Below are positions 1-10,160 of a stretch of 64,000 nt of DNA, piece by piece (the first letter of the stretch is position 1; each line of letters opens with the position of its first letter). The notes beneath the pieces were generated by a model. It saw nothing but the letters and a program-made list of their open reading frames with translations. It had not been told where the DNA came from and did no database searches. The position numbers and the translations under genes were made by a program. The DNA is from Botryllus schlosseri (Eukaryota). The stretch is taken from assembly GCA_051294905.1 (NCBI GenBank), contig CM119378.1:11160001-11224000 (forward strand). The letters are read 5' to 3'.

Positions 1-2451
1 CCTAGAATCGTTCTGATTGATGAAAATTCCCTCCGCAGGTGTGTGTAATCTCCATTTCTATCCCGTCATTTTTCGTGTTCAGCGGGAATGAGTAAAACAA
101 ACGAAAACAAATTAGTCAAGACTTTGATGAGTGTTGGCACGCCGATTTAACGAGCTGCACTTGCGCGTCGTAGATCTCGGACATTTCGGGGCTTTTCTAT
201 AGCGTTATGGTACCGAGAGCTCGACGGAATCTACATATCTTTTCTTCATCCTTAGCCTTTTATAGTGCTAATATTGTCGGGATTTGTGTGATATATCCGA
301 TTAAGCGATGTTGTGAATATCATGACTTGTCTAGAGCGTCTACGTTCCCTTAAGTTGAATATGCTATTATATCTGTTACTAATGTTAAAATAGATCATTT
401 ATTAGTTTACTATATATTTCGATCCAAGCGATCGCGTTCTTACGTAATTACATCTTACTAATATACTCTCAGTCACTTTTCGGTGCCAGTTTCGGATATC
501 AATTATCATAAACGAGTACAAGCTCTTCGCTTCCATGTCACGCTTCTATAGTCTCTTAACGAGCTCTTACAAAAACTGTTTTGTTAAGGTAAAATTAGTG
601 CTCGGAGCCTAGATTAGGCTCGTGGATTTGTTGACGGAGGACATTGTCGGCCTATGAGTGTGTCCCTCTGAATATCTGAATCGCACGCGCGATGCTTATG
701 GGCGACAGGCCGTTAATATTAGGTAACGCATTTGCCAAGGTGACCGTAAATGGAATATGGCACCCATACGGCGGCACGCACGCGGCAAACCTTTTGCCAT
801 AGAAGGTATTTGTTGCACCGCAATATCGTTGACGTCACTACACTTGAACTCCGAAATGAGTTATAGGCGTGTATGGCCAATTGGCCATTGGCCATTGAAG
901 AAGTAACAGCACATCCTACTACCTACACCATGGTAACCTTACAGCCTACATCCATCGGATCACAATTGTTAATCGATGTATTTTTTTAGCCTGACGAATC
1001 GGTAAAGTTTAAATTTGATAGATTAACCCACAACAACAAACTGATTTTGGTCCAAACCTGCGCAGAAATCACGCATGTGAAACAATAATAAACTGAATTC
1101 GACCTCAATTATCCAAGACAGTCGTGAACAGTCGTGAACATAAGCGATCTAACTGTAACGGCTCGAATGTTATTTTTAATGTGAATCAGCGTTCGGTAAA
1201 TGATTGGTGTCACGCGAAAGTATTTCATCTCGCCGCTGCGAAATATGTAATATTCTTATACACGTGCAACACTTTAATTGAATTCGCGATTTATATCGAA
1301 ATAAGTTCGCAAACTACTTCCCACTATAATGCAGAAATGCCCGCTTAGATTGACGGTGGCTCAGGAAATTCCGTTATCTGCGATGCAATCATTTTTCAGC
1401 TCAATTATACCGCGGGCCAGTTAAGGTACACAATAGCTGTCATCCACCATTGAGATCATGGTGATAGATAACTGCTCAACTCGCAAACGACTGCATAATA
1501 TTGCCCTACCAAACTGGTCTTCAACAATTTCACCAGGGATAACCTAATGAAGAGTTGTGGCTCGCACTGTCATCCATGATATTCTCTTGTCCCGCCATGA
1601 AGAAGTGTAAGATCAGTGTCTTTAGAAGCAATGTCACGTTTTATCCTGAATGCTGCATTGAGAACCACGCATCTTTCTTAATAACATACTCATGGATATA
1701 TCAATGTACGATGTACACTACAGTACATGTGTGCATGTATACGCATGTACTTGCACGTGTACGGTCGTAATTCCATCACTTTGTGAAGCAAATATTTATA
1801 CCCTTTGTAGCCGTATTTCGTAATTTTGAGGCTGTCATCATTTATCCACAGTGTTACTTAAACAAATTTAGGATATATACTCAGCGTAGTATTTCCAAAA
1901 ATAGTAATTCAAGACTTACCATAATGGTCGATTTAGCAAATTCGATCCTAATCCTTCGATCTTGATAGTGCAAATCAATTTGGTAAATTTCTCTGGAGGT
2001 GGCGTTCAACTTCAATTGGGCTATTTATTGCACTTTGGAGATGGTATCGGGATCGGCGAATATCTGATATGATTTAGTTTATGGGATAATTGGAGATGGC
2101 CATCAGTCATGAATAAAATTGCGGTGAGTTTGCGATATCGTAAACTGAGATTTCACGGTGTTGTACTTTCGGGAAGCCCGCCAGACAAATATTAACGAAG
2201 TTCAATACCGTCTCCCTGAATGATCCGCGAGACTGTGATATACTTCACTTCGCTTACTCCACTTCACATTTGATTTTCAGATTAATACTTATACAGACCT
2301 TACAGAAATACGAATATCATTTGGCTCTAACTCTACGGTGCAAGTTTGATCAGTTGGTCTGCGAACTTGAAGTATTGGTATATTTTAACATTGAGGTTTT
2401 CTATGAGCCCGTAATTCATTGTCCAGCTGTCCCTCAATATCACAAGTGCAG

Positions 2452-2654
2452 TGTCGTAAACTGACTATTGCGTTGAATAACGAACTGAAGCTTTATTAAA
2501 GCAAAGGTAACCAATGTGGCTTTAAGCAACATAGAACACAACTGACAGCAGAACAGAAGAGAATAGAATGACACGGTAACGATAAGGCGACACTGTACTG
2601 TACAACGTAATTAATCAGATGAAAGTAATTATTGCCTAATTGCGGATCACCACA
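2452..2654 (-). repeat. 3' LTR (203 bp)
   Basis: Identical to the 5' LTR and directly preceded by the polypurine tract. Confidence 0.97.
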
Positions 2655-5700: not shown

Positions 5701-6375
5701 AAAAAAGCACTTCTGATCAGGTTTGATTGTTTTGCTCATTGCGTTGAGTCGACTGCGAGTTTCTGCGGATGATAGTTCGACTTCAGGATTAAAAGATTTT
5801 TCCAGCGGTTCGACGCCGACAGATGAACATGGAGTGCTGCAATAGATACTAGAGCTTCGCTGGGCGAATTCTAATGAGCGGGCTTTTGAGATCGCCATTT
5901 CGAGGGTTACAGCCCCGTCACTTTCTAATAACCTTTGTCTGATAACGTTTGATCGGAGACCAGTAACGAAAGCGTCGCGGATGGACTCCTTGCGATGATT
6001 TTCCGCCGAGAGAGTCTTGAATGTGCAATCTTTCGCTAGATCTGCCAAGGCACGGGAAAATTCCTCGATCGTCTCTTCGGGCTTCTGAGTACGGGTTACT
6101 AGCATGTGGCGGACGAAGATTTCGTTCTTTTGCTTGATATAAATTTTGTCGAGAAGTTCTATTGCGGTATCGTAAGTCGAACTTTCTTCAAAATAGGAAT
6201 AGACAGACGACGACACGAAATTCGTTAAGATCTTCAGCTTGTCGATCTGTGTATCTTGATCAAATGATGAAAGAAAATTATCGAAGGTCTTCTTCCAATG
6301 CTTATACTGTTTTTCGGCGGAGGCGGAGTCCGGACTGATATCGAGCTTGTCTGGTTTCAGAATCCTTTCTGCCAT
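2707..6375 (-). CDS. Gag-Pol polyprotein (Gag with two CCHC knuckles, aspartic protease, RT, RNase H, integrase), 1222 aa, single frame
   Basis: Knuckles CFFCGQTFHSRYKC and CGYCGVLGHYEVVC (5608-5709). Protease ALIDSGS (DSG at 5464-5472). RT motifs LDLKSAYYQ, LPFG and YLDN. RNase H TIECDASNAAIAAILSQ. Integrase HDTLGH...CARCRIC zinc finger plus DFKGP / HSDRG / SQCER catalytic D-D-E. No chromodomain or env seen. Confidence 0.97.
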   Translation of the reverse strand: MAERILKPDKLDISPDSASAEKQYKHWKKTFDNFLSSFDQDTQIDKLKILTNFVSSSVYSYFEESSTYDTAIELLDKIYIKQKNEIFVRHMLVTRTQKPEETIEEFSRALADLAKDCTFKTLSAENHRKESIRDAFVTGLRSNVIRQRLLESDGAVTLEMAISKARSLEFAQRSSSIYCSTPCSSVGVEPLEKSFNPEVELSSAETRSRLNAMSKTIKPDQKCFFCGQTFHSRYKCPAKRSECGYCGVLGHYEVVCMRKATDNRRTVTAMISYFSAIGVPKCLIKARIVVKIGSHITFALIDSGSAESFISTGYANEIDLKSTPYYSTVTFASKSHSRKIEELYRPDILVNETKYTEFPLKGMEDLCADVVLGLDFMNLHKRVIFNMDGDRDTLELPRDQKYSVCGVAQACVEAPQIFKFMTPNCKPIATKSRRYSEADLHFIKAEVAKLEKEGIIEPSSSPWRAQVLVVNDGRHKKRMVIDFSQTVNRYTLLDAYPLPRIDDQVNNIARFKVFSTLDLKSAYYQVALSPDDRPYTAFEAAGNLYQYRRLPFGVTNGVSAFQRIIDNVIKDNKLTGTFAYLDNITVCGMDKDDHDRNLDAFLNAAQRFSLTFNHSKSIIRSTEIDLLGYRVSHGVIKPDPERLKPLIDLLPPRNNPELKRVCGMFAYYAKWLPNFSDKIRPLYSVEKFPLSENASIAFNDLKRELVDASLGRIDETSPFTIECDASNAAIAAILSQNGRPVAFMSKALSPSEIRYSSVEKEASSIIAAVRKWAHFLHGRHFTLVTDQRSVAFMFDGKSKGKIKNTKIQLWRVELGQFSYDIVHKPGALNVAADMFSRTTSSYCASISPCELGSNLNRIHDTLGHPGVTRLHHFVRSKNLSFSLNDVRETCARCRICAQIKPNFYKCNPQVLVKATKPWERINVDFKGPLKSNKSPFMFVVIDEYSRFPFAFPCRNTSALTVVSCLSTLFAVFGLPGYVHSDRGTAFVSKEVKDYLHSRGVATSFTTPYHPTGNSQCERLNQTLWRTIKLILKSTGVSESCWADALPHALHSVRSLLCTSTNSTPHDRFFSFPRKSMVGNSVPSWLLTPGPVFLRKFVRNKGDELCSEVELLEANPTYARVRFPNGRESNVSLNDLARFPTGEETPSTNPETKQAEPCSVDIDGHEPSREVSNVELKSSDEEPQESNHSEDVPDDSSRNLDVELRRSTRVRRQPDRYGNFVSH

Positions 6376-6377
6376 GA

Positions 6378-6393
6378 TTCTATGTTGCTTAAA
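6378..6393 (-). other. Non-tRNA primer-binding site complementary to the element's own LTR (putative self-priming site)
   Basis: Minus-strand TTTAAGCAACATAGAA starts 1 nt after the 5' LTR. It is the exact reverse complement of the LTR 16-mer at 6464-6479. There is no TGG, so no tRNA CCA complement. Confidence 0.85.
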
Positions 6394-6394
6394 T

Positions 6395-6597
6395 TGTCGT
6401 AAACTGACTATTGCGTTGAATAACGAACTGAAGCTTTATTAAAGCAAAGGTAACCAATGTGGCTTTAAGCAACATAGAACACAACTGACAGCAGAACAGA
6501 AGAGAATAGAATGACACGGTAACGATAAGGCGACACTGTACTGTACAACGTAATTAATCAGATGAAAGTAATTATTGCCTAATTGCGGATCACCACA
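6395..6597 (-). repeat. 5' LTR (203 bp)
   Basis: Reads TGTGGTGATCC...GTTTACGACA on the minus strand, is identical by eye to 2452-2654, and contains AATAAA (6441-6436). Confidence 0.97.
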
Positions 6598-6768
6598 TGC
6601 AGTTTTGTTGTCCATCGCTTTTGTGATCAAATACAAGCATGCATTTCCAACTTCGATTCAGCCTAAATTAAGAAATCTTAGCAGGCGCCATAAGTATCTG
6701 AAAATTTTAAAATTCACATAGCTGTCTGTCCCACATCCCACAATATGCGCATTTTGACAACTTAATAT

Positions 6769-10020: not shown

Positions 10021-10160
10021 AATATACAATTGAATAGTATATTCATATTGATATGAACCCGAATATTTTCGGCTGACATTGCTGACGATTACCCCTGACG
10101 AGTGTCAGCCGAAAATATTCGGGTTCATATCAATGTGAACATACTATCTAATTGTATATT
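10021..10160. repeat. 140-bp imperfect palindrome (58-bp arms, 24-nt spacer)
   Basis: Arms 10021-10078 and 10103-10160 match at 54 of 58 positions as reverse complements. Confidence 0.9.

Follow-up and report, generated by a model that had tools for sequence, protein, structure and literature searches.

A Compact Ty3/gypsy Retrotransposon of Botryllus schlosseri Probably Primes Reverse Transcription from Its Own RNA

The window, a 64-kb stretch of Botryllus schlosseri DNA, contains on its minus strand a young, intact Ty3/gypsy retrotransposon that probably primes its own minus-strand DNA synthesis from its own RNA, a Tf1-like process being the best reading of the sequence. Beside its 5′ LTR the element carries a candidate primer-binding site (PBS) that is complementary to a segment of the same LTR at 16 of 16 positions and begins 1 nt beyond the terminal CA of the LTR. 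The full pattern, a CA end, usually one A, and then 11 to 19 nt complementing an LTR stretch 23 to 69 nt before the LTR end, was identified in about 35 distinct families, 17 of them in the host genome. Self-priming had been proposed in a preliminary description of this DNA, and the proposal is supported by the fixed register of the pairing, by covariation in the ~35 families, and by the absence of TGG from the site.

Results

The complete element is 4,146 bp long (6597-2452, minus strand), and its features are collected in Table 1. The order PR-RT-RNase H-IN, together with an RT nearest to that of Ty3, places it in Ty3/gypsy (Metaviridae), and among solved structures its best match is Ty3 Gag-Pol (7q5b; E = 7e-61). 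The gag-pol ATG lies at 6375, 2 nt past the PBS 16-mer. The preliminary description had recorded a Gag with two CCHC motifs and no chromodomain in the element, and this holds: the knuckles are at residues 223 and 243, and the gag-pol ORF of the window has no chromodomain match (PF00385) at E ≤ 0.01. The family to which the window copy belongs is represented by at least 20 full-length copies of 93 to 100% identity in a genome of ~495 Mb.

Table 1. Coordinates of the retrotransposon in the window and of the sites relevant to priming
Feature	Position	Strand	Evidence or remark
5′ LTR, 203 nt, TG...CA	6395..6597	-	100% identical direct repeat with 2452-2654; edges read from the sequence
3′ LTR, 203 nt	2452..2654	-	100% identical to the 5′ LTR; preceded by the polypurine tract
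TSD CTGCA, upstream copy	6598..6602	-	identical 5 nt at 2447-2451
TSD CTGCA, downstream copy	2447..2451	-	identical 5 nt at 6598-6602
Polypurine tract AAGGGGGGTAGAA	2655..2667	-	abuts the 3′ LTR; relatives have ..GGGGAGA/GGGGTGA.. at the equivalent place
Single gag-pol ORF, 1,222 aa	2707..6375	-	Gag (2 CCHC), protease, RT, RNase H, integrase (H2C2 + core)
Candidate primer-binding site TTTAAGCAACATAGAA, not tRNA-type	6378..6393	-	position conserved; covariation with the LTR arm
Single A between LTR end and PBS	6394..6394	-	present in 35/43 types of the pooled table
Candidate self-primer segment TTCTATGTTGCTTAAA, 5′ LTR	6464..6479	-	exact complement of 6378-6393; homologous segment in all relatives, then GCC/ACC
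Copy of the candidate self-primer segment, 3′ LTR	2521..2536	-	sequence match to TTCTATGTTGCTTAAA
AATAAA, probable poly(A) signal	6435..6440; 3′ LTR copy 2492-2497	-	sequence; between the 16-mer and the LTR end
TCAGTT, putative initiator-like motif	6483..6488	-	A at 6486, 7 nt before the 16-mer

The edge of the 5′ LTR reads CA-A-TTTAAGC..., and the TGG of a tRNA-type PBS is absent there; no tRNA gene was found within the 64-kb window. The preliminary description had reported the missing TGG and the exact complement of the PBS at 6479-6464 and 2536-2521, a TCAGTT 7 nt upstream of the 16-mer, and an AATAAA between the 16-mer and the LTR end, and we confirmed all of these coordinates, with the two motifs found at 6488-6483 and 6440-6435. 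It had also judged the 16/16 match to lie beyond chance, which agrees with our counts: allowing up to two mismatches, 0.13 matches are expected by chance in the whole 64-kb window, whereas three were observed, a number reached in 0 of 100 shuffles, and relatives keep the same geometry. AT-rich sequence somewhat raises the frequency of random matches, but with the shuffles failing to attain the count and all relatives sharing the geometry with compensatory changes, it is extremely improbable that the pairing is a random inverted repeat or a by-product that is neutral and has no role. RNA spanning 6486-6370 is predicted to fold into the PBS-LTR stem (−34.4 kcal/mol, z = −5.0, with 0 of 200 shuffles as good), and six further pairs, which take in the AUG, lengthen the predicted stem.

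A protein search of the genome returned more than 2,400 candidate relatives, and those that were scored include many intact ORFs of 1,200 to 1,280 aa with 56 to 59% RT-IN identity. Twenty related loci were taken from the genome, of which 17 were complete and three that were degraded or tandem (L031, L032, and L039) were not parsed. The 17 complete relatives have LTRs of 158 to 260 nt that are 99.2 to 100% identical, with TG..CA ends and 5-bp TSDs, and in every one of them the LTR ends in CA followed by one A. In 15 of the 17, the next 12 to 19 nt are the exact reverse complement of a segment of the element's own LTR, and in L046 and L049 the complement is off by one base; the LTR segment sits 34 to 64 nt before the LTR end in the relatives and 69 nt before it in the window copy. 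Examples of paired PBS and LTR arms are TTTTACTAACTTAAAT with ATTTAAGTTAGTAAAA, TTTTATTCACTAAA with TTTAGTGAATAAAA, and TTAAATGAACTAA with TTAGTTCATTTAA. The 17 distinct types in the genome, window copy included, were compared in columns anchored at the priming position. Columns 1 to 11 are 100% Watson-Crick in the 17 types, and seven columns contain two or three pair types; when the PBSs were reshuffled among families, none of 20,000 permutations attained the observed pairing.

At L046 (G000 C11:8872305-8880266) the two LTRs are 100% identical, and both read ..AATAAGA followed by acc against a PBS that reads TTTTATT.... The result is one G-U at pair 2, which suggests that a wobble beside the priming end is either tolerated or still awaiting resolution.

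The best database homologues share 53 to 79% identity with the window protein and are single-ORF proteins of ~1,200 aa on contigs of ~4 kb. Named sources are Ciona, Mytilus, Biomphalaria, Palaemon, Armadillidium (flagged as contamination), and Trichuris, and a Ciona protein (P0019) is a close match at 58% identity. A PBS-LTR complement of 16 nt was found in a Mytilus edulis relative and in a TARA plankton scaffold, one of 17 nt in a Biomphalaria glabrata relative, one of 14 nt in a relative from the Armadillidium assembly, and one of 16 nt with a single mismatch in a relative from Trichuris suis, which is an older copy. Several more ENA and Logan contigs share the design (in Logan contig L061, a circular collapse, the two ends carry the same 31-mer), and JGI metagenome contigs contributed about 15 further types with RT-IN identity down to 44%. 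Two close JGI types differ by one compensated change, CAAGTTTATTAAA with TTTAATAAACTTG versus CAAGTTGATTAAA with TTTAATCAACTTG. Unrelated hairpins detected by a loose whole-locus inverted-repeat scan (L075, L105, L109, and L139) were excluded from the counts. RNAalifold applied to 22 representatives independently predicts a 12-bp stem in which 9 of the 12 pairs have changed on both sides and almost none is broken. Covariation between PBS and LTR arm in related elements was the comparison suggested in the preliminary description, and the outcome of both the permutations and the RNAalifold prediction is that pairing is kept in all relatives by compensatory changes.

None of the ~35 families examined has a TGG-type PBS, and their sites begin TTT or TTA after CA and A. 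Whether a host tRNA might act as primer was judged from the PBS sequences: the ~35 sites differ from one another, none starts with TGG, and each matches its own LTR. A host tRNA primer does not fit sites that begin TTT, vary among families, and match the LTR of the element that carries them.

An AATAAA or ATTAAA lies inside the LTR arm in 24 of the ~35 types, and some other types have weaker variants. The arm of the window family and that of L044 contain no usable hexamer, and AATAAA lies 22 and 8 nt downstream, respectively. Beyond the arm the sequence continues with GCC in 24 types and ACC in seven. The hexamers within the segment, and the extension of the window fold across the start codon, would suit a structural leader stem concerned with poly(A) masking, packaging, or translation control, in which case the primer would be some other RNA, for example a tRNA fragment. 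We consider this distinctly unlikely. The window family and others keep 13 to 16 bp without a canonical hexamer in the segment, and the ~35 different PBSs, which lack TGG, share no sequence that could match one host RNA. The register is fixed as well: the last pair of the duplex lies, in all families, at the base adjoining CA and A, where DNA synthesis must start, and nothing in a structural, packaging, or poly(A) stem would need that register. The right edge of an LTR is set by the start of the minus strand, and since the duplex ends there, A6464 lies exactly at the position required of the primer 3′-OH. Self-priming is favored because the duplex always ends where minus-strand synthesis must begin, and the pairing thus points to priming and not merely to a stem.

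The position of the transcription start relative to the segment bears on which copy of the segment would act as primer. TATA-like boxes are present 27 to 32 nt upstream of the segment start in four families (L037, L038, L042, and L061), a spacing that would put transcription initiation at the segment itself. About 12 families have an NTAGT/TCAGT motif 9 to 12 nt ahead of the segment; a start there, if used, would give the primer a 5′ overhang that Tf1 lacks. Because a Tf1-type plus strand copies the whole primer, the length of the complementarity should equal the distance from start to cut.

RNA data were available from three runs, in all of which expression of the element is very low, the bulk run X24 contributing 10 reads. 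Single-cell read depth over the LTR comes mostly from one solo LTR in a host transcript, and the reads from the element itself were too few for mapping of start or poly(A) sites. In four reads of the single-cell run X22, the 10x template-switch oligo is joined to the LTR inside AATAAA, at ~6437 on the minus strand, which puts the 5′ end of an RNA 27 nt downstream of the segment. A second start site, comparable to the downstream one of Tf2, may account for it. The contig run X1 was rejected as transcript evidence, being a collapsed LTR-internal cycle. A solo LTR elsewhere in the genome, with the TSD CATCG, is read through in sense inside a host transcript, and so the LTR poly(A) signal is not efficiently used there.

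The poly(A) signal is located in U3 in some retroviruses. The segment, which holds AATAAA in most families, could likewise be the last part of U3, with transcription starting downstream of it; the element would then still prime itself, but with the copy of the segment that lies close to the 3′ end of the same RNA molecule or of a co-packaged one. The four template-switch reads place a 5′ end where this arrangement would have it, and the covariation fits it equally well. However, the TATA-like boxes of four families predict a start at the segment, and a primer joined to ~4 kb of upstream RNA would leave plus-strand strong-stop DNA with no defined end. Wild-type Tf2, moreover, produces mostly downstream-start transcripts that lack the self-primer (PMC5341516), and because Tf2 makes both kinds of transcript, downstream 5′ ends in the window element are compatible with an upstream start. 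We regard priming by the 3′ copy as unlikely, and self-priming by the 5′ copy as the preferred reading.

Discussion

Self-priming by the 5′ copy would take the following course. Genomic RNA would start within the LTR, at 6479 or a few bases before it, and its first ~16 bases (6479-6464) would fold back over a 70-nt loop, composed of the rest of R, U5, and one A, to pair with 6393-6378. The RNA would be cut after A6464, between 6464 and 6463 and just before the conserved GCC, and by analogy with Tf1 the cutter would be the element's own RNase H (PMC4600332). Synthesis from the freed 3′-OH across the A and U5-R would yield strong-stop DNA, which would then transfer to the 3′ R in the manner usual for LTR elements, and plus-strand strong-stop DNA would copy the primer. 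Copying of the primer into the plus strand would re-create the binding site in each cycle, and the arms would stay complementary. Window-family copies that have diverged to 95-97% carry changes in one arm that the other arm does not match, as is expected from decay after insertion if complementarity is restored during replication and not in place. This exact Tf1-like course is rated somewhat less secure than the use of an own-RNA primer in general.

To our knowledge, experimental proof of self-priming is confined to fission-yeast elements. The Tf1 duplex is 11 nt long, and that of the window clade, at 11 to 19 nt, is longer. Tf1 and Tf2 have been shown to self-prime, and Tj1 is proposed to do so (PMC4600332, PMC5341516); self-priming has also been predicted for sushi-ichi and the vertebrate Tf1/sushi elements, for plant and fungal Tcn1 chromoviruses, and for the plant copia lineage TAR (PMC6317226, PMC2864245). 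Like Tf1, Tf2, and Tj1, the window element has no tRNA-type PBS, the bases beside its 5′ LTR complement a stretch of the LTR (in the Tf elements, of the R region), and the duplex ends where a cut must release the primer 3′-OH; like Tf1, it encodes gag and pol in a single ORF. It differs from all three in its lack of a chromodomain and in its clade's animal hosts, and also in that the segment overlaps a poly(A) hexamer in most families and is followed by the conserved GCC/ACC. Unlike those of Tf1 and Tf2, its start site and cleavage are deduced from sequence. As in the predictions for sushi-ichi, Tcn1, and TAR, self-priming is read here from PBS-LTR complementarity alone, but those elements are chromoviruses or copia elements, whereas the window clade is compact, at ~4.1 kb, and has no chromodomain.

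The clade ranges over tunicates, molluscs, one nematode assembly, and marine or host-associated metagenomes. By architecture alone, it can be likened to the Mag lineage and Cigr-1 (PMC6238403), Ty3/gypsy groups of animals, tunicates and molluscs among them, that likewise encode gag-pol in one ORF with two CCHC motifs. The chromodomain at the integrase C terminus, the mark of the Tf1/sushi chromoviruses, is missing from the window element, and with no chromodomain listed for any of the 120 best homologues, it is plausible from the sequences that the clade is a lineage separate from Tf1/sushi. The literature searched contains no statement of self-priming for Mag-, SURL-, or Cigr-1-type elements or for tunicate gypsy elements, a search that older primary papers lay outside of, so that a prior description is possible.

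What gives the finding most of its value is how broad the clade is and how clean its covariation. The finding also bears on the evolution of priming mode in the Metaviridae: should the clade prove not to be the sister of Tf1/sushi, self-priming either arose more than once in the family or is ancestral. A clade-wide case backed by covariation, in animal elements that lack a chromodomain, would establish that elements able to do without tRNA primers are common in animal genomes. This matters for annotation tools for LTR elements that require a tRNA PBS, and such elements would escape host defences that target the PBS by means of tRNA fragments.

If transcription starts as proposed, R would be short, consisting of the segment and roughly 15 to 25 nt, and U5 would be only ~5 to 25 nt. 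Pairing at the 5′ end may hide the promoter-proximal poly(A) signal while the 3′ copy stays free, and the overlap between primer and poly(A) signal suggests a simple and directly testable RNA switch. We put forward tentatively, as a possibility that falls somewhat short of probable, that a large and old clade of animal Ty3/gypsy elements dropped tRNA primers, and that one segment serves in it both as 3′ poly(A) signal and, at the 5′ end, as a PBS-paired primer that masks the signal and is cut before the conserved GCC.

Three further observations concern unusual arrangements in the genome and in the window. A 338-bp copy (L018:1383-1720; G000 C11:5858552-5858889) consists of LTR-A-PBS joined to an inverted U3 that runs to the LTR terminus, with 134-nt inverted arms, a 70-nt loop, precise LTR ends on both sides, and no TSD. 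It looks like a fold-back product, formed from plus-strand strong-stop DNA whose 3′ PBS annealed to its own internal 16-mer; as it has no TSD it is suggestive at most, and we do not count it as proof of an integrase-mediated event. Head-to-tail tandem arrays in which one LTR is shared between units occur at L039 (G000 C10:3652147-3660105), L056, and L057, with self-match spacings of 1,846, 4,040, and 5,886 bp at L039, 4,102 bp at L056, and 3,961 bp at L057. Finally, the window contains at 10021-10160 an inverted repeat, MITE-like or hairpin-like and not related to the element, whose 58-nt arms are 93% complementary and lie 24 nt apart.
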